Shown in pieces: positions 3,661-63,137 of a stretch of DNA of 64,000 nucleotides. This DNA is from Octopus sinensis. Lineage: Eukaryota. How positions within the stretch are numbered: the stretch's first letter is position 1; each line of letters opens with the position of its first letter. The position numbers were made by a program, and so were the translations under genes. The stretch spans positions 4,836,001-4,900,000 of the forward strand of contig NC_043002.1 in assembly GCF_006345805.1 (NCBI RefSeq), in the 5' to 3' direction. The notes beneath the pieces were generated by a model, which was not told where the DNA came from, made no database searches, and was given only the letters and a program-made list of their open reading frames with translations.

Positions 3661-4939
3661 CATGATGCTCAAAGTCCTCCCAATGTGTAGGATTTTTTCT
3701 TGTACAAGCAGTTCCAAACCTGCAAATAAGTTTGGTTGGTGTGACTGGCCGTTTCCTTTTAACAGTTTCACTGTCTTCAGATGATGAAACCAATTTGTCT
3801 AAGGCAGTTTCAGTTGTTGATGTGACAGAGCTTTTACCTGAAGAATTTGTTTTGGAGGGTTTGTGGGAAGTGTCAGAGCTGTCTGACTTAACACTTTTGA
3901 TTTTAGATTTTGGCGAATGCGTATCAACGCCTGAGTTATCATCATCTGAATCTGAATCTGAATCTGAATCTGAAGAACTTGATGCAGAAGATGAAGAAGA
4001 TGAATGTGAAGATGATGGTGACATTTTATGATGACTTGATGATGAATGTGTCATGGGACTATGGGAGTTTGTATCTGGTGAGTTGCCATTTACATCACTG
4101 TTGCTACTGCTCTCATTCTCGCTATCACTAGAATTGTTATTTACAACAAAATCTTCATCAGAATCACTTCCAAAAATATCATGCATTTTTGAGTTCAAAG
4201 AAGATGAAGTATTATTTTGATTCGTAGCCTTTTCTGTATGGGATGTTTTCTTAGGAGTAGGAGTGGGGGAACAATGGGATGTCTTCTTTGATGTCGATGA
4301 ATTGTTTGATTGGCTGGGCAGAGAAGACGAACGATGACATAAATTTACTGGATTTGAAAATAATTCTGACCCGTTAACAGCTGAACTATCAGGTCTATGC
4401 GATGATTTTTTTGAAGAATTAGAACTATCTTTTGAAGATGAAGAAGAGCTATGTTGAAGAGTATGATGATTTGTTTTATTAGCTTTCTGTCTGGATTCAT
4501 GTGAAGAAGACCGAGAGCCATTCTCGCGGCAGGGATTCTGATGCTTTCTGGAATCGACTTTGACAGAACTGGATAACTTCTGGACATGGTGCTTGGAATT
4601 GTATTTACTTCTAGAATTTTGTTCGCTTTCCGAGTCAGAATCACTTTCAGAAATTGCATGTGTTTCTTGTCTGGATTTTTTTGAAGACATTATTTTCAAA
4701 AGTTCCGTAGATAGACAAGGTGTGACTACAGTGTCCGCCTTATCAAAAGAGTTATTGGAATAGTCAGAAAAGAGATCTTGACCACTATTGTATGCTAAGG
4801 TATCGGGATCAACTGTAACATCAGAGTCAGGTTCTGAGTCTGGGAGAGACTCTGGTTCTTCTGTTGCATCCGAGTCAGATATGTCATGCACTGCTTTATT
4901 GAGCAGAGTCGACTTAGAAGCCGAGTGAAACTGTGACTG
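3661..4939 (-). CDS. TDP1: TDP1-like N-terminal exon: about 426 aa Ser/Asp-rich region ending in a PBZ zinc finger
   Basis: Open frame with acceptor ttttcag| (NAGNAG) at 4940 and donor |gtaatt at 3660. 1279 bp, phase 0-1, in frame with exon 657-911 (HH-E-IEEKK). [20 protein letters not shown] (3665-3724) fits PBZ C-x5-C-x6-H-x5-H. Confidence 0.72.
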
Positions 4940-5032
4940 CTGAAAAGAAACAAAACACTGAGTAAATAAAGTGAATAAAATAAATGTACATAAGGCTTGA
5001 AACAAGTATATATGTATGTATGTATGTGTGTG

Positions 5033-5068
<36 letters not shown>

Positions 5069-5089
5069 CGTATATATATATATATATAC

Positions 5090-5160
<71 letters not shown>

Positions 5161-5161
<1 letters not shown>

Positions 5162-5478
5162 CGCCGTGATCACCGTGACCGACCAGGTTATCAGATGTTG
5201 CTACACATCGCTGGTCACAATGCGCTTCGCATTGTTTTAGCCTTCAAATGACGCCACCCCGCAAGCTAAGTGAGCAGGCCAACAGAAGAAAGAGTGAGAG
5301 AAAGTTGTGGCGAAACAGTACAGCAGGGATCACCCCCCCCCCCACCCCCTGCTGGAGCCTCGTGGAGCTTTAGGTGTTTTCGCTCAATAAACACTCACAA
5401 CGCCTGGTCTGGGAATCGAAACCGCGATCCTACGACCGCGAGTCCGCTACCCTAACCACTGGGCCATTGCGCCTCCAC
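5161..5478 (-). mobile_element. tRNA-derived SINE, family A (tail type 1)
   Basis: Near copy of 988-1286. Confidence 0.85.
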
Positions 5479-9363: not shown

Positions 9364-9745
9364 GTGGAGGTGCAATGGCCCAGTGGTTAGGGCAGCGGAC
9401 TCGCGGTCGTAGGATCGCGGTTTCGATTCCCAGACCGGGTGTTGTGAGTGTTTATTGAGCGAAAACACCTAAAGCTCCACAAGGCTCCGGCAGGGATGGT
9501 GGTGATCCCTGCTGTACTCTTTCACCACAACTTTCTCTTACTATTACTTCCTGTTTCTGTTATACCTGTATTTCAAGGGGCCGGCCTTGTCACTCTCTGT
9601 GTCACGCTGAATATCCCCGAGAACTACGTTAAGGGTACACGTGTCTGTGGAGTGCTCAGCCACTTACACGTTAATTTCACGAGCAGGCTGTTCCGTTGAT
9701 CGGATCAACCGGAACCCTCGTTGTCGTAACCGATGGAGTGCTTCC
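9364..9745 (+). mobile_element. tRNA-derived SINE, family A (tail type 2)
   Basis: Family A head and core followed by a different 3' tail (…gtaaccgatggagtgc). Confidence 0.85.
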
Positions 9746-10001
9746 ATCCAGTATATATTACCAACATATATGGCAGAAATCACAAGCACCAAGGCCATAC
9801 TGTAAAGTCACAGCTCTGTTGTGGAGGACACACTTCCACAATGGAGAGCCCTCACCTGCCCTAGATTGTATAGTGACCCCTGCACTGACCACTATGTCAG
9901 AGGAGCTCAAAAGAAAAAGACACAAAGTTGCCCTGAATAAAACCCTCGTTGCATGTCATATTGAGCAATGGTTATCCATTAAATTATGAAGTTTGAGGAC
10001 A

Positions 10002-10419
10002 TACCTATTTCTTTACTACCCACAAGGGGCTAAACACAGAGGGGACAAACAAGGACAGACAAACAGATTAAGTCGATTATATCGACCCCAGTGCGTAACT
10101 GGTACTTATTTAATCGGCCCCCGAAAGGATGAAAGGCAAAGTCGACCTCGGCAGAATTTGGACTCAGAACGTAATGGCAGACGAAATACCTATTTCTTTA
10201 CTACCCACAAGGGGCTGAACATAGAGGGGACAAACAAGGACAAACGGATTAAGTTGATTATATCGACCCCAGTGCGTAACTGGTACTTATTTAATCAACC
10301 CTGAAAGGATGAAAGGCAAAGGCGACTTCATCGGAATTTGAACTCAGAATGTAGCAGCAGACAAAATACCGCTAAGAATTTCGTCCAGCGCTCTACCAAT
10401 TCGGCCAGCTTGCCGCCTT
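10002..10419 (-). mobile_element. tRNA-derived SINE family D with tandem 185-bp duplication of its 3' part
   Basis: tacctatttctttactacccacaagggg occurs at 10002 and 10187; head aaggcggcXagctggc at the right end. Confidence 0.85.
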
Positions 10420-11008
10420 TTGAGGAAATACCATCCCCAGTTTGCCATCTCCTTCAAGAATGCCAGCAGAGCTGACTTTGAATTCAAAAGAATTTTGAGG
10501 AAGAAACATGAAACAGCAGCATTTGGACTTTTGGATAGAATTTCACTTGCAGTTGTTAAGCTTGGTCTGCATAACATTTATTAGTCTACACAACTACAAA
10601 TGTGTCTACTATTAACATAGTCAACTTTTTCCCCTATTCATGGATTTTCATTTGCAAAGCCACACACAAACACACACATATATATATATATAAGGATAAG
10701 ATTGTTAATTTAAAAATAAAGTAACAATTTTATCAAGTGGTCAGCATGGAAAAAATAACCTTCAAAGGTAATAATTATTAAAATTATAAATTAGGGTATA
10801 TACGAGATACCACTATGCTTTTTTTTTTACCACCAATATTTTTTTACTGGAATGAGTTAGAAACAATGGTCTAGGAACTAAATTAGATGGTAAACGTTTT
10901 TAATTTTCAATCCTTTCGAGAATTTATCCGTAATTAGTGGTTTGAGTTTTCTACTGCTCTTTCTAGCACAAGGCTTTCCTTTTTGGAAGCCTCTTAATGT
11001 GTTCTAAT

Positions 11009-11073
<65 letters not shown>

Positions 11074-11093
11074 CACACACACAACACACATCA

Positions 11094-11860
11094 GCATCAT
11101 TTAATGTCCGTTGTCCATGCTGGCATGGGTTGGACAGTTTGACCAGGGCTGGCAAGCTGAAAGGCTGCACCAGAATCCTGTCTGATTTGGCATGGTTTCT
11201 ATGGCTGGATGCCCTTCCTAACGCCAACCACTCCGAGAGTGTAATGGGTGCTTTTACATGCTACCAAGATGGGTGACATTTGTGTGACACTGGTATCTGC
11301 CACAACTGCAATTTTACTTGGCTTGACAGGTCTTCTTCTCAAGCACAACATAATGCCAAAGGTCTCAGTCATTGCCTCCAAGAGGCCCAACCCTAAAAAA
11401 GAGCTCAGCCACTTTGCCTCTGCTTTCCATGCTAGCATGGGTTGGACGATTTGACTGAGGACTGGCAAACCAGATGGCTGCGCCAGGTTCCAATCTGATC
11501 TGGCAGAGTTTCTACAGCTGGATACCCTTCCTGACGCCAACCACTCCAAGAGTGTTGTTGGTGATTTTACGTGCCCTCGGCATGAAGGCCAGCCTAGCGG
11601 TACTGGCAATGGCCACGTTCAAAATGGTGTTTTTTATGTGCCACCTGCACAGGAGTCAGTCCAGCAACACTGGCAACGACCTCACTCGAATGTTTTTGTT
11701 CACATGTCACCGGCACAAGTGCCAGTAAAGTGATGCTGGTAACGATGACGCTCAGATGGTGCTTTTTACGTGCCACCGGCACGGAAGCCAGACAGCTGCT
11801 CTTGCAGTGATCCTGCTCGGATGGAGCTGTTAGCGCTCCAAAGGCACAGGTGCCAGTCAC
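11094..11860 (-). mobile_element. Two tandem RTE 3'-tail elements
   Basis: Two copies of the ccatgcXXgcatgg ... ggatgcccttcctaacgcc block. Confidence 0.8.
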
Positions 11861-18845: not shown

Positions 18846-19818
18846 ACATATATATTATTAATATTTAACAAAAGCAACAGAGTGACTCAAGGGCCAAGAT
18901 TTTCATGCATTGGCACTCATCAAATTAGATATTTTTATATATAGTTTAGTTGGTCTGGGACTATAGCAGAAGAAACTTGCCCAAGGTGTCATGCAGTAGA
19001 ATATCATATCACTTTAACCTTTTATTCGTTTCAGTCGTTAGACTGTGGTCATGCTGGGGCACCACCATGAAGAATGTTTTGTCAAACTTACTGATGCCAG
19101 CACTTTTTTTCAAAAAGCCTGGTACTTATTCTATCAATGATTTCAGCCAAAATGCTAAGTTACAGGGACGTTAACAAACCAACACCAGTTATCAAGTTGT
19201 AGTGTGGAACAAACACAGAAACACAAATATATATATATGTATGTACACGAGTGTGAGCATTGACAGAGCGGCTAACTGGCTTCCATGCCAGTGGCACTTA
19301 AAAGGCACCATTCGAGCGTGATCGTTACCAGTGTCGCTTTACTGGCACTCAAGCCCCGTGCTAGTAGGGTATTAAGAGCACTATCCGAGTGTGATCGTTA
19401 CCAGCATCACCTTACTGGCACCTGTGTCGTGGCATGTGTAAAAGATTTGAGCGAGGTCGTTGCCAGTACCACCTGACTGGCACGTAAAAGCACCCACTAC
19501 ACTCTCAGAGTGGTTGACGTTAGGAAGGGCATCCAGCTGTACCAGATCAAGATTGAAGTATGGTACAGCCATCTGGTTCGCCAGCCCTCGGTCATACGTC
19601 CAACCCATGCTAGCATGGAAAGCAGACGTTAAAAACGATGGTGATATATACAAAGGGCTTCTTTCAGTTACCGTCTACCAAATCTTTGGTCAGCCTGAAG
19701 CTATAAGACACTCCGCCATGGTTCCACACAGGAGGAATAAAACTAGAACCATGTGGTTTAGAAACCAGCTTCATGCCATACAACCACGAATGAATATATA
19801 TATATATATATGCTTTTT

Positions 19819-22723
19819 GAAGAATGTACCCCACAGAAGAATGTACCCCACAACATAGACTGGTAGTTAGTGACTTTAGGATCAGGACTAGGAGGACAAC
19901 CAGAAGACGACAAATATGGAGAAGAAGGATCTGGAAGCTTAAAGATCCTGCAAATGGACAGAGATTTAGGGACATATTACTTGAAGCCTCTGACGAAGTA
20001 GAAGGGGATAGAGCATCACAGGGGGTAGAAGACAGCTGGACGTTTCTAAGGGACAACCTGCTGAGAGCCACTGACCAGATCTGTGGCTGGTGCAAAGTCC
20101 CCTCTCGACCTAGAATAACGTGGTGGTGGAACAATATTGTAGACAGGGCTATTAGAGAAAAGAGACAGGCTTGGAAGGTCTGGAAAAATGGGGGTAGCAG
20201 GGAATTGTATCAGACTGCCAAAAGAGAAGCTAGGAGACAGGTTTATTTAGCCAGAGGGGAAGCAGATAAGAAAAAATTTGCCAATGTTCTGCGCCGTGAG
20301 GACCAAAGACTGGAGGTGTTTCGTGTTGCAAGACAGTGTGTGAGAGAGAATCGTGATGTGGTAGGAGAGAAGTGTGTTCGCATGGAAGATGGTTCACTTG
20401 CGCTAAATGAGGATGCAAAGAGAGAGGTCTGGAGATGCCACTATGAAAGGTTGCTGAATGAAGAAAATGAATGGGATAAAGAGAGTCTGCCGAATGTTGA
20501 CCCAACAGAGGGACCAGCTATCCGAGTTGATAGTTCTGTGGTAGCTAAGGCAATTAGAAGCATGAAGACAGGGAAAGCCCCAGGCCCATCAGGAATCACT
20601 GCAGAGATGCTCAAAATGTCTGGTAGTGTCGGCTATAGCCTAGTCACCCATATAGTTAATCAGGTGATACACAAAGGGGTCATACCCAATGACTGGTGTA
20701 GCAGTATAATAGTCAACTGCTACAAAGGTAAAGGTGATGCCCTAGATACAAATAACTACAGAGGTATCAAGCTGTTGGACCAGGTGATGAAGGTTACGGA
20801 GAGGGTCATAGCCCAACTAATTAGAGAGAGAGTTAGTTTAGATGAGATGCAGTTTGGTTTGTGCCAGGGAAAAGTACTACTGATGCTATATTCCTGGTAA
20901 GGCAGCTGCAGGAGAAATACCTAGCCAAAGATAAGCCCCTGTACCTGGCTTTTGTTGACATGGAGAAAGCCTTCGACAGGGTCCCCCGATCCCTTATCTG
21001 GTGGGCAATGAGAAAACTAGGGATAGATGAATGGTTAGTGAGAGCTGTGCGGGCCATGTATAGGGACGCCGCTAGTAGGGTGAGGGTTGGAAATGAGTAC
21101 AGTGAAGAATTCCGGGTAGAGGTAGGGGTCCACCAAGGCTCAGTACTCAGCCCCCTCCTATTTATCTTAGTCCTCCAGGCAATAACGGAGGAATTCAAGA
21201 CAGGATGCCCTTGGGAGCTCCTCTATGCTGATGACCTTGCTCTAATTGCTGAGTCGCTATCAGAACTGGAGGAGAAGTTTCAGGTGTGGAAACAAGGATT
21301 AGAATCGAAGGGCCTTAGAGTCAATCTAGCTAAAACCAAAGTCGTAATCAGTAGGAAGGTAGACAAATCACAAACACCTTCAGGTAGATGGCCCTGCTCG
21401 ATCTGTAGAAAAGGTGTAGGTAGAAACTCTATAAGATGCACCAAGTGTAAGCTATGGACACATAAGAGATGCAGCAATGTCAAAGGAAGGCTAACTAGGA
21501 AGATGGTTTTTGTATGTGGCAGATGCTCAGGAACAATAAACACTGAAAATGCTCTGAGACCAACTTCCGTCACTTTCCAGGGAGAAAAACTAGAAATAGT
21601 TGATAGTTTCCGTTACCTAGGTGACCAAGTCAGCAGCGGGGGCGGGTGTGCTGAAAGTGTAACTGCTAGAGTAAGAATAGCTTGGGCAAAGTTCAGAGAG
21701 CTCTTACCTCTGCTGGTGACAAAAGGCCTCTCGCACAGAGTGAAAGGCAGACTGTATGATGCGTGTGTACGAACAGCCATGCTACATGGCAGTGAAACAT
21801 GGGCCGTGACTGCTGAGGATATGCGTAAGCTCGCTAGAAATGAAGCCAGTATGCTCCGATGGATGTGTAATGCCGGTACTCACACTCGAGAGAAAAGCTG
21901 GACCTAAGAAGCATCAGTTGTGGTGTGCAAGAGAGACGTTTGCGCTGGTATGGTCATGTGGCGAGAATGGATGAAGATAGTTGTGTGAAAAAGTGCCACA
22001 CCCTAGCGGTTGAGGGAACCCGTGGAAGAGGTAGACCCAGGAAAACCTGGGACGAGGTGGTGAAGCACGACCTTCGAACTTTAGGTCTCACTGAGGAAAT
22101 GACTAGAGACCGAGACCTCTGGAAGTGTGCTGTGCGCGAGAAGACCCGGCAGGACAAGTGAGTCCACAACCCGTGGCCTTCTACATGGGATGGAGCCAGC
22201 CTACGTATGCATACCTTCCCTTCTTGGGACACAAAACTCTACTTGTGAAGACGTGTTGAGGCAAGTGAGGATCAGAATCGAAATCGATCAATGGAAATTG
22301 CGGATGTGCTACCAGTGCCGGTGGCATGTCGAAACTCTGCTTGTGAAGACCCATTGAGGCAAGTGAGGATCAGAATCGAAATCGATCAATGGAAATTGCA
22401 GATGTGTTACCAGTGCCGGTGGCATGTAAGAGAACTTTCCGTTTCGCGACCGTTGCCAGCCTCGCCTGGCCCTCGTGCCGGTGGCACATAAAAAGCACCA
22501 TCCGTTCGTGGCCGTTTGCCAGCTCTGTCTGGCACCAGTGCGGGTGGCACGTAAAAAGCACCCACTACACTCACGGAGTGGTTGGCGTTAGGAAGGGCAT
22601 CCAGCCGTAGAAACACTGCCAGATTTGACTGAGTCTGATGAAGCCTTCTGGCTTCACAGACCCCAGTAGAACCGTCCAACCCATGCTAGCATGGAAAACG
22701 GACGCTAAATGATGATGATGATG

Positions 22724-22725
<2 letters not shown>
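19819..22725 (+). mobile_element. 5'-truncated RTE-clade LINE, frameshifted ORF2 (end of APE domain, RT with PHD finger), 3' UTR and (GAT)n tail
   Basis: ORFs 19824-20900, 20861-21907 and 21925-22161 carry QHRLVVSD, YRGIKLL, DMEKAFDRV, VGVHQGSVLSPLLF, LYADD and RRLRWYGHV; frameshifts near 20860 and 21890. Confidence 0.95.
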
Positions 22726-22764
<39 letters not shown>

Positions 22765-22952
22765 ATACACACACAGTATTCTTCCGAAAGAATGCCAAAT
22801 ATACTAATAAAATTTGTAGCATATACATTCATAGATGTATATAGGTAACATTTACACACATACATACACACCCACACACAAAGCAATTTACGAATCATTT
22901 TTTTTTTTTTTACTATACACACACACACGCAAGTATGCACACAAATGCTCAC

Positions 22953-23021
22953 GTAGGACTGAACATACGACATGCAGCCGAAGAGAGTGAGATGCAACAT
23001 CGCAATTACAGCGGGACACAT
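22953..23021 (-). CDS. Candidate first coding exon with signal-peptide-like MCPAVIAMLHLTLFGCMSYVQSY
   Basis: ATG at 23021, strong donor tac|gtgagc at 22952, phase 0, unique CpG-containing context; product unknown. Confidence 0.35.
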
Positions 23022-23454
23022 GTGTAATGTGTTGGCGGAGCGGAGGAGGAGGAGGAGGAGGGAGGAGGGGGGGACCAAACACCGCTGACAATAATCTTAA
23101 TTTCCATAACGCAAACGGTATAAAGTCACCCGACGGAGGTGTGAAATTGAACATATGCAAGCATGCACACATGGATGTGCAGGAATAATAAACATAATAA
23201 TAAACGTAATAATAATAGTAATAATAATAGTGATAATGATAATAATAATAAGCCAGAGAAATTGATAAAAAAAAAAACAGCTGTTCAGTTTCGGCAGGTT
23301 GTGACGTGGGTGTATATGAGAGAGAGAAGTCAATTACCTCTTTCAGAATTTCATTTTCATTTTTGCTAATACTCAATGTAAGATATATATGTCTTTTACA
23401 CACATATATATCCCTGTGTGTGTGTGTATATAAGCATATGTGTGTATATATATG

Positions 23455-23488
<34 letters not shown>

Positions 23489-42694: not shown

Positions 42695-44682
42695 TGTATT
42701 TACACAAAATGTGATCCTGAATTTAATGCAACCCCAACTTTGTGTAGATAACAATCAGTATTATACTTTTGCTCTGTGAACCTCAAGTACAACCATAGTT
42801 GTTTAGACTTTTTAAGAAACCAATATATTTTCACTGCAAATGTTAAAACACATAAAACAGAAAAATCAAAATAAGATCTAGCATGGTTCCTGTTTTTGCT
42901 CAGTAAAAATTGCTTAAAAGCTACTGAGTGAAGGTTGTAGCTTAAGTTTAAAGAAAAGGTTATCAGAAATATAACGAACTTATCAATTAAAAATCATCAA
43001 AGTGTGATTCCTCATCTGACTCTTCAACTATCAGCAAACATTCTTCATTTAACTTTTCATCAGAGTCCTGTTCTATTATTTCATCATCTTCGTCATCTAA
43101 ACTTGTAGAGGTACCTAAAGTTGCATCTTGGCAATTCCACAGCAGGTAATCTTCCGTTCCATCCAGTTTATTACTGATGCCAGTTTTTAGAAAGCTCTTG
43201 GAAACCAAATGGTCAGGTAAAGAATTCCAAGCTATTTTAACCCAAGTAACAACAGTAGCAAGGTCAGGTTCTTTGAGATTATCACCTGTCGTATTTTCCA
43301 TTTCTTCGGATGATATCCAGGACATCCAGTGCTTTCTAAATTCATTTTGAAATGGTTTCTTCAAAACAACATCAAGGGGCTGAAGAATACTCGACAAACC
43401 ATCTGGGATAACAGCTTCATATGTTTTCATACCTTTCAATATGCGTTTCACTGGCTCAGTAAGGTGAGCCCTAAACTGGTCCCACACCAACATTGCAGAT
43501 TTGTTTAAATGTGCTCCAGGTCGTTTACTCCAAACCTTTCTCAGCCAAACATCTACCCCTTCTCCATCCATCAAGCCTTTGGGATGACAGTGAACAATAA
43601 CTCCAGAAGGAAATATTTCACTCTTTGGAATTGTCTTTCTTTTAAAAATAACCATGGGATTTAGCTTGGTTCCATCAGCTAGACAACACATAACTACAGT
43701 AAAATGATTTTTTCCGTGTTCTGCTGTTCTCCCATAGATATTTTTACTTCCCAGGGTTCTGGCCCCTGACTTGTCAAAAACCAAAGGCACCTCGTCCATG
43801 TTCCCAATTTGACTCAGATCAAAGTCATGCTGTTTTCGCAATTTTATTATAAAACTATAAAACTGCACAATTTTCTCATCCAAATCAGTGGGAAGCTTCT
43901 GTGAAGTTTTCGTTTTCTGGCGTGAAGCTAAAGAATATCTTGAGAAGAATCTCTGGCACCAGCCATTTGAAAATTTGAAAGATTGACACACTCCATATTT
44001 CTCATCTTGCGACATTTTCTTTGCTTGTAACTTTATATGCAGTGTCGTTACAACACATCCATCTTTCCTTCTCTTTTCCACCCATTCGGCTAATTCTTTC
44101 TCCAGTTCGGGATAGTGAGCCTGTTTTCCTCTCAGAGATTGTTTACAACTTGGCATTTTCAGCAGTTGAGCTTTCTCCTTTCGCCATAACCTAATGTTAC
44201 TCTCAACAACCCCGAATTTTCGAGAGGCTGCACGATTAGTATTCCTTTCAGCAAATTCTATGGCAGTGAGTTTAAATTCTGCACTGTAAGCAATACGTCT
44301 CTTTTTCGAATCCATACTTTTAAATCATAAGGCTGTAGAATGGAAATTTTTTAAAGAATTACCAACGTATGTCAGTAATATAACTTTAAAGTTCTGAACA
44401 GTAAACTTTTTAATTGACTCATCACTTTTTGACAGATTGGAAACAACACATCACCAGTGTGCAAACTGAATTAATAACTGCCACTGGAATCTATTCGCTA
44501 CACATAGGATGGATCATAGCCGCAATTAAGTGCGTGTGTATTTCGTTTGATGTCTCAGGAATGCCATTTTCAAATTTCACCTTTATACATATTTTTAACA
44601 CTCGAGTATAATGCTACCCACCTAGTTTCGACCCTGACATTTTCTCATGGTAAATTTCTCGCATTGTACATTAGTAAATACG
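42695..44682 (-). mobile_element. Relic boundaries of the pogo/Passer element (decayed TIRs)
   Basis: tgtatttac at 42695 versus gtaaatacg at 44674-44682, and related gagtataatgc-like subterminal motifs at 44601 and about 42716; the match is short. Confidence 0.45.
42987..44315 (-). CDS. Intact pogo/Passer-type transposase-derived protein (BrkDBD-like HTH, CENP-B HTH, DDE_1), 442 aa, probably domesticated
   Basis: Uninterrupted ORF; NMDE, WDQFRAH and QPLD give DD35D spacing; acidic C-tail; Kozak aaaagtATGg; acceptor and branch point immediately upstream. Confidence 0.9.
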   Translation of the reverse strand: MDSKKRRIAYSAEFKLTAIEFAERNTNRAASRKFGVVESNIRLWRKEKAQLLKMPSCKQSLRGKQAHYPELEKELAEWVEKRRKDGCVVTTLHIKLQAKKMSQDEKYGVCQSFKFSNGWCQRFFSRYSLASRQKTKTSQKLPTDLDEKIVQFYSFIIKLRKQHDFDLSQIGNMDEVPLVFDKSGARTLGSKNIYGRTAEHGKNHFTVVMCCLADGTKLNPMVIFKRKTIPKSEIFPSGVIVHCHPKGLMDGEGVDVWLRKVWSKRPGAHLNKSAMLVWDQFRAHLTEPVKRILKGMKTYEAVIPDGLSSILQPLDVVLKKPFQNEFRKHWMSWISSEEMENTTGDNLKEPDLATVVTWVKIAWNSLPDHLVSKSFLKTGISNKLDGTEDYLLWNCQDATLGTSTSLDDEDDEIIEQDSDEKLNEECLLIVEESDEESHFDDF

Positions 44683-44904
44683 ATTAATTAGCTTTGTTTG
44701 AGAAGGGTTGATGGGGAGGAATGGACAAGAACAACAACGACGATGACGGCCAGGGTGGAATGTCTACTGAGAAGCGAATATCAATGAAGAGAAAGACAGA
44801 GAGGAATATCGAACTGTTCGAACAGTTTCGTTTGATTTGCTGTCCTAACACGAAGTCGGTCTGAGCAAACAAATAAAGAGTTGTGGGTTTTGGTTTATTC
44901 TTAC

Positions 44905-45130
44905 CTTCGAAGACATCACAGAGTGTTCAGAAGCATTGGAGGAACATATTCTATTTATTCTCACCAACTTTTCGAATACATTCTTATTGACTGAGCCTTA
45001 TGTATATTTCACAACATAAAAATTACATAATATCCTAAATATTTCTAAATTATTTCGAGATATTTTTTCGTTTCTCTCGAAAATATAGAAAATTAATTTT
45101 TTTTTTTAAATCACATTTTTTTAATACGAA
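44905..45130 (-). other. Candidate first exon (ATG TCT TCG AAG then gtaaga donor)
   Basis: Consensus donor aag|gtaaga at 44904 beside a CpG-containing promoter-like region; upstream boundary approximate. Confidence 0.45.
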
Positions 45131-45139
45131 TCTATGGTT

Positions 45140-45153
45140 GTTGCTATGGATAC
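45140..45153. promoter_or_regulatory. RFX X-box motif
   Basis: gttgctatggatac; its reverse complement GTATCCATAGCAAC matches the consensus GTHNYY-AT-RRNAAC; lies between two divergent candidate first exons. Confidence 0.55.
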
Positions 45154-45182
45154 TGGCGCCAAAATTGAGTGACAGAAAGCTC

Positions 45183-58726: not shown

Positions 58727-59975
58727 TTGGGTCATCCCATGAATGTTTTTTTCATACTTTTTCAAAATTAAAAAAAACAAAGTTCTTTTTTAATCTAAAA
58801 TATACTCTTTTTCATTTTCTACAATGCTCTTTCATCTATCTAGTAGACTTGCAAGGCCCTTCTTCCAAAATTCATTTGTCTGACAAAAAATACTCCTCCA
58901 GTATTGTTCTGACCACGTCTACAGAATTCATATATTTTCTGTTCAAATGATTTTGAAGACAGCAGAATAAATGATAATCAGATGGGGTAATGTCTGGTGG
59001 GTGGGGCATCGTTTTCCATTGAAACTGCTCCAACCTTTGGAATGTCATCCTCGCTGTATGTGGCCAAGCATTATCCTGATGAAAGAACAGCTTTTGTCTT
59101 GAAACCAAAGATGGTCGTTTCTTTTCTAGCGCTAACTTAAGCCGCTCAATTTGCTCACAGTAGATCTCCTTTGTTATTGTTTGGTTTGGGTTTAAAAGTT
59201 GAAAGTGGATTAAACCTTTCATATCCCACCAAACAGATTACAACACTTTAGGTAGGTGAAGGCCTTCTTTAGCCTGGGATGCTGGTGTTTCCCCTTTCCC
59301 TGCTCACTGTCTTCGGTGCTTGACATTTTTATAGAGAACCCATTTCTCATCACCAGTCACTATTTGGTCTAAAAAAGGTTCATTTGTGGGATGTGACAGC
59401 AGAGATGAGCACATATTCACTTTCTGCACACAATTGGACTCAGAACCCATTGACCCAATTTGCTGACTTTTCCAATGGCATACAGGTGTCGATGAATGAT
59501 TGAATGACTAAATCCAAGCTTCTCTGCTAGTTCTTCAACAGTTACGATGGGATTTTGTTCCACCAAAGTTTGCAGGATGTCCTCGTCAAGCTATACAGAT
59601 CCTCCATGATGAGGCTTGTCTTCTAGGATGTAGTTTCCGTCTCGGAATTTCTCGAATCATTGTTGACACTGGCTTATGCTTATTGTCCGATCCCCATATG
59701 CTGCGTTAATATTATTTGCACTTTCCGTTGCATTGTTGCTTTTATTGAACTCATAAAGCAAAATATGCCGAATATGCTCCTTTGTCACTTCCATTATAGT
59801 TTTGAAAAAGGAACTGTTAAAATCGAACTGCACTCTACAAAACTTACACTAAGAATAAATACAAGGTAAAATTACTACCTGCTTTTATAGCAAGTTGATG
59901 CACGTAGTTTATCCCATCCCCATCCGACTTTTAGACCATGCAATTGAAAAAACTGCATTATATGGGATGACCCAA
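58727..59975 (-). mobile_element. Full-length defective mariner (1249 bp)
   Basis: TA|ttgggtcatccca ... tgggatgacccaa|TA; FHQDNAWPH and HPPDITPSDYHLF motifs; multiple stops and frameshifts. Confidence 0.92.
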
Positions 59976-60335: not shown

Positions 60336-61564
60336 CGAGGGGCGTTCAGTAAGTAATGCCCCTGACCCACTTCCCATAGCAGTAGAGCAACGAAACTTGG
60401 CACAGTTATTAGTCTTTTTCTACATAGGAACCACCCAGAGTTACGCATTTTTCCCATCGTTTGATGCAGCTCTGGAGACCGTTTTTGTAGAAGACCCCAG
60501 CTTGGTCCTCCAACCACGACGTGACTTCAGAAATCAAGGCTGCATCATCTGGGAAACGCTTTCCTTTCAAAAACAACTCCATGGCTGGGAAGAGGTGAAA
60601 ATCAAAGGGTGCAAGGTCAGGAGAGCAGGGGGGATGGAGGAGGAGTTCATAGCCGCACGCCTGTGCTTCTGATTTAGCGACACGCGAGTTGTGAACCAGA
60701 GCGTTGTCCTGCAGGAGGAGGATGCCTTTGCTGATCTTGCCCTGCCTCTTGATTTTGATAGCTTCTCTTAATTTCCTCAAAAGTGAAGCATAATAGGCTC
60801 CTGTAATTGTGGTACCCTTTGCCAGGAAATCTGTCATCACTACTCCGTCCTGGAGGTGAGTCACGGTGCTTCCACTGCATTGACTGGGCTTTGGTCTCTG
60901 GATCATAGTGATGGACCCAGGTTTCATCCTGTGTAATCAGTCTTTTAAAAAATTTTGACTCGTCTTCTTGGCACATCTCCAAATTCATCCTCGAGCACTC
61001 GACGCGTTCTTGCTTCTGGAAAGGTGTGAGCAACCTGGGAATCCATCTGACAGACATCTTTTGCATATGCAAATGGTCATGAATGATAGTTTACATAGAC
61101 CTGGTACTAATCTTGACCTCATGGGCTATTTGGCGAATAGTTATGCGTCGATCTTCCAAAATGGCAGCCTCAACTTGACGGACAGATGCCTCATCAATGG
61201 CATAAGGGGCGACCAGATCTGGGAGCTGTTTCCACAGAGTTCCAACCATGTTTGAATTCACGATGCCAGTGTTTTACAAGGTCATATGATGGGGCATCAT
61301 CACCATAAGTTACATTCATTTCATCAAAAGTCTCCCGTGGTGTGCGTCCTTTCAAATACAAAAAACGGATCACTGCTCGACACTCAACAGGCTCCATTTC
61401 ACACTTGACTCAGTTCAAACACCTGTAAATCAGAAACCACAATTAGTTCAGAGCTGTAATTTGCCACTTAATCCATAGAGATATAAATAATTGCACATGC
61501 AAAATTTCACCTAGATCAAACAACTGCAAGTGGGCCAGGGGCATTACTTATTGAATGCCCCTCG
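60336..61564 (-). mobile_element. Full-length defective mariner, irritans-like subfamily (1229 bp)
   Basis: TA|cgaggggcgttcagtaagtaatgcccc and matching right TIR; MEPVECRAVIRFLYLKG, WIPRLLT, ITQDETW, LLQDNA and SPDLAPFD spread over three frames. Confidence 0.95.
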
Positions 61565-62070: not shown

Positions 62071-63137
62071 CCCTTTCGTTACTATATTTCTGACCAAAAT
62101 ACACCCCTTATGTGTTTCAATTAATTTCTAACGTAATCATAAATTTAGTCTGGTTTCATTAAACAACTATAACTTTTTTATTTATCAATATATTAACGTG
62201 AATTTTGGAAGATAATTTAATGAAATGTTCTCAACCAATTCTATACTATAATTTTTGTCACAAAGTGACTCTAATTGCAGGTAGATACAGGTAAATTCAA
62301 CAAAATATAAAATTATTAAAATTTTGTTCAAACATCGCTATAGAAAATGGGTTATTAGCTAATATTCAATTGGGTATACAACAAAATTTTACGATAGAAT
62401 TTGTTATTCTGGGTAACTTTCTGATACCCATAATAATATTTATGGCAAAATAGTCTTAATTTCATTTAAGATTATGGGAAACCACTTTCTTTCGTTTTGT
62501 TTACATTTAGCGTAACGGTTCGTTTCCACCGTAATGATTTCAAATAGGCTCATTCGAAAAAGTAAAAAGAAATAGTCTAAGGCTTTACTCTTCTGGGAAA
62601 GTCTGTGGCTTGGTCCAGTTTCTTCAGAAAAATCACCGAAAGAAACAGTTTTTGAATTTTCACTCCATTCAGGTGCCAATTCATTTTCTTTATCACTGTC
62701 GGAGGTCTCAGATTTACTGTTTTCACTTTCGGAAAATGAAACATCAGATTCATTATCAAATACCACGTGCTTTTTTTTTTCAGTCATAGAGTTACATTTA
62801 TGAAGGTCTTCAGTAGAAAATTCTTCAAATTCTGACTCGCTGCTTGATATAATGAAATTCGTATCCATTTTTTGTCAGAATTACAAATTTTGAAAACACA
62901 ATAGGAACAAATTTGGGAAAAAAATCTCCCAAAATTCACGGAATTAAAATTACACTTCGATTTTTGTACAAAACTGTAGTTGAACTCTTTAAGAAGTATA
63001 ATACGTGTTTTCACGAATGTACTAAAAAGATTTGCTCTGATATTCTCATTTAAATATAAATAGGTAAATTCGGGCGGTTTTGGGCGGCTTGGTCACATTA
63101 ACCAAAATTTTTTTCGGGCGGTTTGGTAACGAAAGGG
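62071..63137 (-). mobile_element. Internally deleted piggyBac element (1067 bp)
   Basis: TTAA|ccctttcgttac ... gtaacgaaaggg|TTAA; ORF 62440-62868 has an acidic N-terminus and LDYFFLLF...IITVETNRYA, the PGBD4-like N-terminal motif; no DDD core. Confidence 0.9.

Follow-up and report, generated by a model that had tools for sequence, protein, structure and literature searches.

A probable domesticated Passer-family pogo transposase in the first intron of octopod PBZ-TDP1

Is an intact transposase reading frame in the first intron of an octopus DNA-repair gene a mobile element, the relic of one, or a gene of its host? The question arises in a 64-kb window of the Octopus sinensis genome (the whole stretch of DNA analysed here, to which all unlabelled positions refer), where such a frame lies shortly behind the start exon of PBZ-TDP1. 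The initial annotation of this stretch proposed a domesticated pogo/Passer transposase. That core proposal is now strongly supported by three lines of evidence: orthologues at the same site; a dN/dS of 0.23; and the loss of the TIR pair. With high likelihood the frame is a pogo transposase gene of the Passer family that has been domesticated, or exapted, with a product whose function is predicted. A new host gene is very probable because selection has kept an immobile ORF intact at the same spot in at least three octopods.

Regulators and genome-maintenance proteins, among them RAG1, CENP-B, SETMAR, PGBD5, POGZ, and POGK, have repeatedly arisen from domesticated transposases. Octopod genomes, for their part, are known for abundant transposons and rearrangement. 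To our knowledge, vertebrates, flies, plants, and yeasts account for nearly all domestications that pass tests of both synteny and purifying selection. From lophotrochozoans nothing had been reported before, according to a metazoan-wide survey that used the domain content of annotated proteins (PMC10027918). The TDP1-intron locus would therefore represent a well-supported cephalopod domestication overlooked by current annotation.

The transposase frame and its host gene

The ORF occupies positions 42987-44315 of the minus strand and is intact (442 aa, stop included), as initially described; the Pfam matches and residue spacing agree with the DD35D signature also described then. Three domains were matched, and no other was found: a first HTH of the BrkDBD/CENP-B_N type (44163-44300, minus strand; residues 6-51, BrkDBD E=1.6e-8); a second HTH, HTH_Tnp_Tc5 (43920-44114, minus strand; residues 68-132, E=4.6e-15); and the DDE_1 catalytic domain (43191-43709, minus strand; Pfam match to residues 203-375, E=2e-27). 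The catalytic codons, all on the minus strand, specify D174 (43794-43796), D279 (43479-43481), and D315 (43371-43373). Each of these columns is at least 98% D among 119 homologues, and the spacing is DD35D since 35 residues separate D279 from D315. The frame is a single exon with an acidic tail. It is present in one copy in the 64-kb window, and likewise in one copy each in an 87.6-kb locus from O. bimaculoides (L003) and a 21-kb locus from Argonauta hians (L001).

Passer is a family of the pogo superfamily, within the IS630-Tc1-mariner group (PMC7386202, PMC9976928), and is recognised by a two-part DNA-binding region, BrkDBD plus HTH_Tnp_Tc5 (PMC7386202). The octopod ORF likewise combines BrkDBD and HTH_Tnp_Tc5 with a DDE_1 domain of the DD35D type in 442 aa. 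Its assignment to Passer draws on domain content, DD35D, and, indirectly, POGK-labelled hits. POGK-labelled (Passer-derived) proteins are the best named matches, at 45-50% identity. Unlike Passer elements, the octopod ORF is without a TIR pair, is fixed at one position in three octopods under purifying selection, and has seven family-invariant catalytic-domain residues replaced.

The coding part of PBZ-TDP1 exon 1 (44905-44916, minus strand) reads ATG TCT TCG AAG, or MSSK, and the donor gtaaga comes next, at 44904 (junction ATGTCTTCGAAG/gtaaga). Exon and donor are kept in all three species, Octopus sinensis, O. bimaculoides, and Argonauta hians. Exon 2 (3661-4939, minus strand) has a tandem cagCAG acceptor, encodes a serine-rich region with a PBZ zinc finger at its end, and is 92% identical to positions 63042-64680 of the O. 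bimaculoides locus. Intron 1 (4940-44904, minus strand; 39,965 nt) holds the transposase ORF, which begins 590 nt into it. The exon 2 acceptor, ttttcag/CAG at 4940/4939, agrees in phase with MSSK.

The initial annotation guessed that the MSSK exon joins a TDP1 acceptor 40 kb away. This is borne out by the O. bimaculoides RefSeq proteins XP_014788086/7, in which PBZ and Tyr-DNA phosphodiesterase domains follow the N-terminus MSSK(Q)SQFHS; the O. bimaculoides gene record begins at the ATG homologous to the exon 1 ATG. The original reading of the frames holds on both counts: MSSK is in phase with the TDP1 acceptor, whereas the transposase, in sense to PBZ-TDP1, is read in another frame. No gene-product record was found for either host-protein isoform X2 or the window transposase protein. 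The intron around the ORF is rich in transposons.

Orthologous position and element ends

Collinearity with the TDP1 locus of O. bimaculoides extends through the full length of the window, and an unbroken 4.5-kb alignment covers the ORF plus both flanks. The O. bimaculoides orthologue (L003, 10605-11933) is intact at 442 aa, has the same start and stop, differs by no indel, and shares 90.5% aa identity. In Argonauta hians the ORF (61% aa identity) lies between homologous non-coding blocks on either side, whose order and spacing match those in Octopus. One anchor of this synteny is a promoter-like non-coding block 5' of exon 1 (45037-45168, minus strand; GGCGCCAGTATCCATAGCAACAACC...), which is conserved to Argonauta at 73% over 139 nt (E=9e-23); the exon-1 homologue and the downstream block match at E=8e-16 and 1e-16, respectively. 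The check for syntenic orthologues suggested at the outset has thus returned a same-site orthologue in both species.

The Argonauta ORF is still open over 384-394 codons. Its first HTH is lost or degraded, its TGHEK loop carries a 5-residue deletion, and its branch is long, so function in Argonauta may differ or be decaying. Across octopods at least, domestication is strongly supported. Of the cephalopod-lineage domestication that was originally suggested, the part concerning octopods (Octopus and Argonauta) stands, on a comparison of three species.

Judged from the shared flanks, the insertion is older than the Argonauta-Octopus split (dS about 1). Its age is stated only relative to that split because no published divergence figure was found in two genome papers. 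Annotation of the O. bimaculoides locus does not list the ORF as a gene. Likewise, a collection of 5.8 billion proteins, including transcriptome-derived sets and the O. bimaculoides proteome, yielded no protein more than 61% identical. Single-exon transposase ORFs nested in introns, discarded as repeats, can be real genes.

What is left of the element itself? A decayed 5' TIR (44659-44683, minus strand; TCGTATTTACTAATGTACAATGCGA) marks the old 5' element end, about 221 nt inside TDP1 intron 1 and 345 nt upstream of the transposase ATG. Of its 25 positions, 20-21 agree with the 27-bp TIR of a mobile relative. This multicopy relative (L002) is 3.7 kb long, and its 27-bp TIRs are 96% complementary and preceded by TA. 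The three-species alignment pointed to the remnant, which was then confirmed by a shuffle-controlled scan tolerating up to 7 mismatches: the remnant is the sole match on both strands of the 64 kb, and 50 shuffles gave no TIR match at up to 5 mismatches. An earlier scan at up to 3 mismatches, a threshold too strict for the remnant, gave no match. The remnant is conserved in O. bimaculoides (L003, 10222-10246) and recognisable in Argonauta. Collinear with it is a subterminal repeat remnant (44601-44619, minus strand; TAGCATTATACTCGAG, versus TCGCATTATACACGAG in the mobile relative). The spacing from TIR to subterminal repeat is 63 nt in the window versus 60 nt in the relative, a short match of weak significance alone.

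The other end is different. A candidate 3' TIR had been proposed at 42695-42703 (plus strand; TGTATTTAC; p about 0.06-0.1). This 9-bp match does not rise above chance, because the window has three occurrences of GTATTTAC on that strand; at the O. bimaculoides site, two of eight bases are changed. Passer elements end in short TIRs (<30 bp) with a flanking TA target-site duplication (TSD). At this locus a search at up to 8 mismatches found no 3' TIR in any of the three species, and no TSD was readable. An inverted-repeat search of the 3.6-kb stretch around the ORF returned 77 pairs of at least 9 nt and no convincing TIRs. If the candidate at 42695 were real, the element length would be about 2.0 kb. 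The early description of TIRs decayed to a 9-bp match therefore needs amending: the decay is genuine, the 5' remnant is better than described, and the 3' match is at chance level. Intact TIRs, which the initial annotation had named as evidence against domestication, were looked for at the locus, and no TIR pair is present. With its 5' TIR decayed and its 3' TIR gone, the element is, to judge from its ends, no longer mobile.

These observations bear on the reading of the ORF as a still-autonomous master transposon copy, kept by family-level selection and not a host gene. Octopus has indeed kept the DDD triad and both DNA-binding domains intact, and active Passer elements occur in many animals (PMC9976928). 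However, a moving cut-and-paste element would not stay at the same site in species at dS about 1, and family-level selection cannot keep a fixed, immobile copy open; the 3' TIR is absent and the 5' TIR decayed. Nor does the protein collection, with the O. bimaculoides proteome, contain a paralogue more than 61% identical. On the shared site, the lost ends, and the lack of a close paralogue in that collection, an active master copy was rejected as very improbable.

On the domestication reading, a cut-and-paste element of roughly 2 kb or longer inserted some 220 bp into PBZ-TDP1 intron 1, in the same orientation, before Argonauta and Octopus diverged. The element ends were lost afterwards, and the single-exon frame has been retained by purifying selection at one locus.

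Purifying selection on the reading frame

The two Octopus ORFs differ at 86 nucleotides, distributed over the codon positions as 25/16/45. These comprise 43 synonymous and 43 non-synonymous changes (dN 0.042, dS 0.180, Fisher p=1.6e-10). The resulting omega of 0.23 depends on the neutral yardstick: measured against the flanks (0.07-0.09), which look constrained themselves, it is about 0.5. An intron-wide neutral estimate of 0.166 was obtained from chained BLAST blocks, of which only 2.2 kb were kept; it was not used as the main yardstick because dispersed SINE hits broke the BLAST chain. The dN/dS check proposed with the original reading has thus given 0.23 between the Octopus species, not a value near 1. 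Derived changes are balanced between the two Octopus lineages (18 versus 14). The first HTH is the most constrained part, with two non-synonymous versus 11 synonymous changes in the Octopus pair (omega 0.04). Between Octopus and Argonauta, dN is 0.23-0.24, dS 0.9-1.25, and omega 0.19-0.26, within a set of comparisons that covers three species only.

Could the frame be a neutral transposon relic that stayed open in the intron by chance? The intron is rich in transposons, the ORF is without a gene annotation in O. bimaculoides, and in the Octopus pair its nucleotide identity, 93.5%, differs little from the 93.0% of the 3' flank. The pattern of change within the ORF argues otherwise. When 86 substitutions were simulated under the mutation spectrum of the flanks, 61.5+-3.9 amino acid changes were expected and 42 observed, a deficit of five standard deviations (z=-5); none of 5000 simulations gave as few. 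Similarly, none of the 5000 reached the observed share of third-position changes (45 of 86). The neutral chance of meeting no stop is P=0.027, and that of seeing no indel, with 13.8 expected from the flanks, is P=1e-6. More than 380 codons remain open in Argonauta at dS about 1. The substitution, stop, and indel tests refute a neutral relic at the level of the three species, leaving it with a negligible probability.

A third reading attributes the conservation to a non-coding function rather than to a protein: the DNA might act, for instance, as an enhancer within the TDP1 intron or as an element close to the promoter. The region lies less than 2 kb from the TDP1 start, and the non-coding flanks are unusually conserved: they are 91-93% identical between the Octopus species, versus 86.5% at 4-fold degenerate sites, and can be aligned to Argonauta. 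Such a function does not, however, yield the three-base periodicity of substitutions (25/16/45), nor the fourfold excess of the synonymous over the non-synonymous rate, nor does it explain zero indels with the same start and stop. Purely non-coding constraint was rejected on these features (codon periodicity, synonymous excess, and zero indels) and is highly unlikely. By the codon comparisons, protein-level purifying selection has kept the reading frame at this locus since the Argonauta-Octopus split.

Expression, product and relatives

Expression would most likely be driven either from the TDP1 promoter region, through an alternative short transcript that terminates within intron 1, or from a promoter located in the old transposon 5' end. 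An ATTAAA at 42727, a candidate 3' end signal, is not kept in O. bimaculoides, whose homologous site is ATTATA. The two promoter sources are favoured because the ORF stands 590 nt past the TDP1 start exon and the flanks are conserved. Splice signals were part of the initial annotation, and its TACTGAC, ctacag, ATG-context, and 44904-donor strings are all present as stated. The candidate branch point and acceptor (44332-44377, minus strand) consist of TACTGAC at 44377-44371 and ctacag ending at 44333, so that the exon would run from 44332. The acceptor stands 17 nt before the ORF ATG, whose context is A-3/G+4. Both strings are identical in the two Octopus species and absent in Argonauta. Identity within the Octopus pair is not very informative, since the two species already agree at 93% of the surrounding 200 nt.

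CSB-PGBD3 and SETMAR are in-frame fusion proteins with documented splicing; PGBD3 belongs to the piggyBac superfamily, a different one from that of the octopod ORF. As here, the transposase ORF lies in sense 3' of a host exon, and the CSB-PGBD3 host is also a DNA-repair gene. In octopods, by contrast, the upstream exon is out of frame and would give only a short upstream ORF. Exon 1 joined at 44332 reads MSSKPYDLKV...LP and a stop: a 28-codon upstream ORF, MSSKPYDLKVWIRKRDVLLTVQNLNSLP, that overlaps the transposase start. An in-frame TDP1-transposase fusion of the CSB-PGBD3 type was rejected on this basis. The CSB-PGBD3-like arrangement raised initially fails as a fusion because the exon 1 and transposase frames do not join.

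A shared first exon may still serve alternative products. The TDP1 promoter would then drive splicing from the 44904 donor to the 44333 acceptor, with the mRNA ending after the transposase ORF. This model addresses how the ORF is expressed; as a sub-hypothesis it does not conflict with domestication. Exon 1 is the true TDP1 start exon; the ORF lies in sense 590 nt downstream; the donor is of consensus type; the branch-point and acceptor strings are the same in both Octopus species; and the ATG context is strong. In addition, the unspliced leader holds 12 ATGs, and splicing or a nearby internal start is therefore favoured. Against this, the TDP1 ATG lies upstream and out of frame, creating the overlapping 28-codon upstream ORF. 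The acceptor and branch point are not kept in Argonauta, the polypyrimidine tract is modest, and the O. bimaculoides annotation contains no such isoform. A shared first exon is thus possible but doubtful.

A more far-reaching version is less likely still. Here each round of transcription from the TDP1 promoter and exon 1 would give either TDP1 or, from an alternative short transcript that stops within intron 1, a transposase-derived protein that is still catalytically intact and acts as a nuclease or binds DNA. Regulation of the two would be linked, and the conserved TIR remnant would be a binding site for autoregulation or for control of TDP1. If true, octopods alone would have coupled a repair enzyme to a domesticated transposase in this way, a functional counterpart of CSB-PGBD3 that relies on alternative transcripts where CSB-PGBD3 relies on a fused protein.

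The domesticated gene is predicted to encode a nuclear protein that binds DNA sequence-specifically and combines two HTH domains with an RNase-H-like DDE core retaining all three catalytic aspartates. A sequence search of the PDB with the transposase protein found no match, and fold comparison was used instead. The confident AlphaFold model (pLDDT 82.8) has a core resembling Mos1, SETMAR, and Sleeping Beauty, and its two HTH domains together match the CENP-B DNA-binding domain 1HLV.

The initial annotation had noted motifs that differ from those of mobile copies. These differences are real and reach further, to otherwise invariant positions. Octopod-specific replacements of family-invariant residues are G199E, L209M, W248L, G305D, T308S, N319K, and G345D; three of these (G199E, T308S, and N319K) fall at positions 93-99% invariant among the 119 homologues and are common to the octopod orthologues. 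Near-invariant family columns are changed at 7-9 of 105 in octopod proteins and at 20 of 94 in Argonauta, against a family median of 3%. All deviating columns lie within the DDE domain, with the DDD triad retained. Octopus sinensis has two private changes, E201G and K323Q, at residues 97-99% invariant. Because several otherwise invariant residues around the DDE core are changed, the product has probably lost normal transposase activity. A role as a regulator that binds DNA, or as a specialised nuclease or recruiter, is more likely. With its three kept aspartates and its place beside the start of a DNA-repair gene, the locus could reveal whether octopods put a transposase to use in DNA transactions or in gene regulation.

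Several known domesticates are similar in kind. Ka/Ks among pogo domesticates is 0.06-0.21 (PMC7386202). In vertebrate POGK and POGZ, as in the octopod ORF, a whole Passer transposase is retained as a host gene; their Ka/Ks is 0.06-0.07, versus about 0.2 for the octopod ORF (PMC7386202). POGZ keeps DD35D and has the Tc5 HTH only, as does the Argonauta copy (PMC7386202). Unlike POGK and POGZ, the octopod ORF is a bare transposase, a single exon nested in an intron, with no KRAB or zinc-finger partner. TIGD, JRK, and CENP-B are likewise pogo transposase ORFs with little or nothing added, many of them lacking introns, that have been kept as host genes with omega about 0.1-0.2; JRK and JRKL also keep the catalytic triad (PMC7386202). 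In contrast to the octopod ORF, TIGD, JRK, and CENP-B are vertebrate genes whose source families are Tigger and pogoR rather than Passer, and no orthology is implied.

'CENPB-type' TE-derived transcription factors have been surveyed in the Octopus lineage, with seven in O. bimaculoides (PMC10027918). That set was picked from annotated proteomes by domain content, mostly with BTB/POZ, and without a synteny or selection test. The octopod ORF is probably not among the O. bimaculoides members because it is not an annotated gene at that locus.

Orthology of the octopod ORF with POGK or POGZ was considered and rejected, as Pfam finds no KRAB or zinc-finger domains and the octopod sequences group apart. 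All three of them fall into one clade of the tree, adjoining unnamed sequences, of which at least one (P0001) is a multicopy element. This separate clade argues for an octopod domestication independent of POGK and POGZ.

A Passer transposase gene within intron 1 of octopus PBZ-TDP1

A Passer transposase gene, immobilised in intron 1 of the octopus TDP1 homologue, has been kept by protein-level selection in octopods. Its ORF (42987-44315, minus strand) is a single uninterrupted frame of 442 codons, and the 64-kb window contains no second copy of it. Pfam identifies a complete pogo-type architecture: a BrkDBD/CENP-B_N helix-turn-helix (residues 6-51); HTH_Tnp_Tc5 (68-132); and DDE_1 (203-375, E=2e-27). 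D174, D279, and D315 make up the catalytic triad, and each of these columns is D in at least 98% of 119 homologues. With 35 residues between D279 and D315, the intact 442-aa ORF and DD35D triad of the initial annotation are borne out. BrkDBD, a Tc5 helix-turn-helix, DD35D, and a length of 400-500 aa form the signature of the Passer family in the pogo superfamily (PMC7386202; PMC9976928). AlphaFold, given 46 sequences, yields a confident model (mean pLDDT 82.8; helix-turn-helix domains and core mostly >90), and the model's top PDB fold matches are the catalytic domains of Mos1, SETMAR, and Sleeping Beauty, along with the CENP-B DNA-binding domain. A PDB search by sequence alone found no solved relative.

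The short upstream exon encoding MSSK had been paired with a distant TDP1 acceptor, and this pairing holds. Octopus bimaculoides isoforms begin MSSKQSQFHS (X1) and MSSKSQFHS (X2), and the gene record has its first base exactly at the homologous ATG, then AAG/gtaaga. The exon (44916-44905, minus strand) is therefore coding exon 1 of octopus PBZ-TDP1. Exon 2 (4939-3661, minus strand) encodes a serine-rich stretch and, at its end, a PBZ zinc finger (3675-3735, minus strand; the O. bimaculoides gene spans 10001-77561 of its locus, L003). Joined to MSSK as at the X1 start, its translation is 91% identical over its full length to an O. bimaculoides RefSeq protein with PBZ (PF10283) and tyrosyl-DNA phosphodiesterase (PF06087) domains; the RefSeq label "bromodomain-containing protein DDB_G0270170" is a misnomer. 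The single glutamine that distinguishes X1 from X2 is explained by a tandem cagCAG (NAGNAG) acceptor (4937-4942, minus strand). Both the PBZ (poly-ADP-ribose-binding, zf-CCHH) and the long serine-rich region are N-terminal to the phosphodiesterase domain. (The annotated 582-aa model has an abrupt end and is possibly incomplete.) Just upstream of the polypyrimidine tract and acceptor of exon 2 is a long (TA)n/(TATG)n microsatellite (5000-5170). Intron 1 is 39,965 nt long, and the transposase ORF lies inside it in sense orientation, starting 590 nt past exon 1.

Orthologues, selection, and the ends of the old element

The ORF occupies the matching position in both O. bimaculoides and Argonauta hians. 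The window species is an Octopus closely related to O. bimaculoides and distinct from it. Collinearity with the O. bimaculoides locus (87.6 kb) holds along the whole window, and one uninterrupted 4.5-kb alignment begins before exon 1, takes in the ORF, and extends into the 3' flank. The orthologous ORF (L003 10605-11933) is intact, with the same start and stop and no indels. The two ORFs differ at 86 nucleotides (25, 16, and 45 at codon positions 1, 2, and 3) and 42 amino acids. By the Nei-Gojobori method dN is 0.042, dS 0.180, and omega 0.23 (Fisher p=1.6e-10), not the value near 1 that the initial annotation had named as evidence against domestication. Neutral simulations (5000 runs of 86 random substitutions under the flank mutation spectrum) predict 61.5±3.9 amino acid changes; no run was as low as 42, and the probability of a stop-free ORF was 2.7%. 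The flanks, about 3.1 kb, contain 32 gap openings, a rate that predicts 13.8 in the ORF, where none is seen (P=1e-6). Derived changes split 18 versus 14 between the two Octopus lineages, with 10 ambiguous, so neither copy resembles a decaying pseudogene.

The neutral yardstick affects omega, which becomes about 0.5 if scaled to flank divergence. ORF dS (0.18) and fourfold-site divergence (0.149) compare with 0.07-0.09 in the immediate non-coding flanks, an excess at fourfold sites of about twofold. Because they are still alignable to Argonauta, the flanks themselves are evidently constrained; the excess would reflect such constraint (UTRs or regulatory DNA) or a local difference in mutation rate. 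The simulations take the number of observed changes as given and are independent of the yardstick.

The top named database match is an Argonauta hians protein (61% identity). Its locus (L001) matches the window in order and spacing: a promoter-like block upstream of exon 1 (window 45037-45168; 73% over 139 nt); a recognisable exon-1 homologue (L001 9205-9228) with conserved donor (gtgATGtttttctaagGTAAag); the region of the terminal inverted repeat (TIR) remnant; the ORF (72% nucleotide identity); and a downstream block about 0.8-1.1 kb past the stop. E-values for the non-coding blocks are 9e-23, 8e-16, and 1e-16. The insertion is therefore older than the Argonauta-Octopus split. Between these genera dS is about 0.9-1.25, dN 0.23-0.24, and omega 0.19-0.26. 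The Argonauta frame is still open over 384-394 codons; the first helix-turn-helix has been lost through a stop codon and frameshifting deletions, and a five-residue deletion shortens the TGHEK loop. The exon-1 homologue contains a one-base insertion (ATG TTT TTC TAA G/gtaaag), so the MSSK start frame is not kept there, although the donor is. Argonauta TDP1 may start in exon 2, or the insertion may be a homopolymer error in the assembly.

In the family tree, the three octopod transposases form one clade. Unnamed sequences form the sister group, among them P0001, a typical multicopy element (29 copies, full and fragmentary, distributed over many large contigs) with subterminal repeats and 27-bp TIRs, 96% complementary, that adjoin TA. 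At the P0001 locus (L002), the BrkDBD part is a separate short ORF (9622-9777) upstream of the main ORF (10001-11320), which suggests an intron or frameshift inside the first helix-turn-helix; the octopod ORF is continuous.

A decayed 5' TIR, TCGTATTTACTAATGTACAATGCGA (44683-44659, minus strand), agrees with the P0001 TIR in 20-21 of 25 positions. No other site on either strand of the 64 kb comes within 7 mismatches, and 50 shuffles gave no match at 5 or fewer. Its strand and side relative to the ORF are as expected; a collinear subterminal-repeat remnant follows it; and it is conserved in O. bimaculoides and recognisable in Argonauta. The element therefore starts about 221 nt into intron 1, and a start at 44916 is rejected. 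No 3' TIR was detected in the window species, O. bimaculoides, or Argonauta. TIR decay, as first proposed, stands, but the 9-bp match on which it was based does not: the 3' copy at 42695 is at chance level (p about 0.06-0.1) and mutated in O. bimaculoides. The old element cannot be mobile.

Catalytic-domain changes and known domesticates

Among the 119 homologues, 105 columns are at least 90% invariant. In ordinary family members the median share of deviating columns is 3%; there are 9 in the window protein, 7 in O. bimaculoides, and 20 of 94 in Argonauta. The deviations are confined to the catalytic domain (G199E, L209M, W248L, G305D, T308S, N319K, and G345D, with E201G and K323Q in the window only), and Argonauta likewise deviates at 248, 305, 308, 319, and 345. 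The DDD triad is unchanged. The motif differences noted initially, AEHGK and VLKKPF, are correct and belong to this wider pattern of replacements at near-invariant family positions. Between the Octopus species, the most constrained part is the first helix-turn-helix (omega 0.04). The transposase-derived protein is predicted to bind DNA through its helix-turn-helix domains, and would retain the DDE fold in remodelled surroundings. A regulator, recruiter, or specialised nuclease would fit better than a working transposase.

Domestication is very probable, and strongly supported, for octopods. Synteny, selection, and immobility uphold a domesticated pogo/Passer transposase in this group, to which the cephalopod-lineage scope of the initial annotation is reduced. 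Vertebrate POGK and POGZ are likewise Passer-derived, but the octopod ORF is independent in origin and lacks a fused KRAB or zinc-finger domain. Closest in form are the bare-transposase domesticates TIGD and JRK, whose type has Ka/Ks of 0.06-0.21 (PMC7386202), a range taken to bracket the octopod value. Seven "CENPB-type" TE-derived factors are listed for Octopus, chosen from annotated proteins for their domain content, with neither synteny nor selection examined (PMC10027918). The O. bimaculoides annotation at the locus lacks the transposase ORF, and a literature search found no published description of it.

Expression and neighbouring repeats

The non-coding DNA between exon 1 and the ORF, and downstream, is unusually conserved, and a leader that starts at the TDP1 ATG and stays unspliced would contain 12 ATGs. 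Together with the 590-nt spacing, this points either to a splice from the exon 1 donor (44904) to an acceptor at 44333, yielding a shared-exon transcript, or to a transcription start inside the transposon's old 5' end. Every string quoted for the splice (donor, branch point, acceptor, ATG context) is present in place. Nevertheless the splice is a rather doubtful candidate: the TDP1 ATG would become an out-of-frame, overlapping 28-codon upstream ORF, and the acceptor is missing in Argonauta. The frame difference excludes an in-frame fusion resembling CSB-PGBD3. The gene would be more significant if its transcript shares the TDP1 promoter, or if the protein acts with TDP1.

Part of the promoter-like block (45140-45168, minus strand; columns 1-60 of the three-species alignment) contains TTTTGGCGCC, an E2F-like site; such a site would be apt for a gene of repair or replication. 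Argonauta does not share its G/C core (CTATGGTGCC), whereas the adjoining AGTATCCATAGCAACAACC is invariant in all three species.

Other repeats are present in the window. A 4.2-kb segment (19246-23481) carries LINE-like reverse-transcriptase ORFs (19824-20900 and 20861-21907, plus strand) with RVT_1 and a PHD-like finger. Nothing collinear with it is present in O. bimaculoides (L003 34224-35075; L003 includes 9,747 N), and it is probably a lineage-specific insertion, with an assembly gap as the alternative. Two mariner-type fragments (58872-59222 and 60409-61072, minus strand; Pfam Transposase_1) lie in broken frames upstream of TDP1. A 142-aa ORF (62440-62868, minus strand), with no Pfam match at E<=0.01, resembles the N-termini of piggyBac-type transposases in its acidic N-terminus and "...TNRYA..." motif. 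A SINE-like repeat is dispersed in both orientations throughout the intron (2760, 13646, 29798, 34522, 36336, and many others) and yields ORFs such as MLAWVGRFNWGL...SDLAVFLQLDALPNANHS. It matches Argonauta L001 12801-12926 at 80-87%, and thus represents an octopod-wide family.
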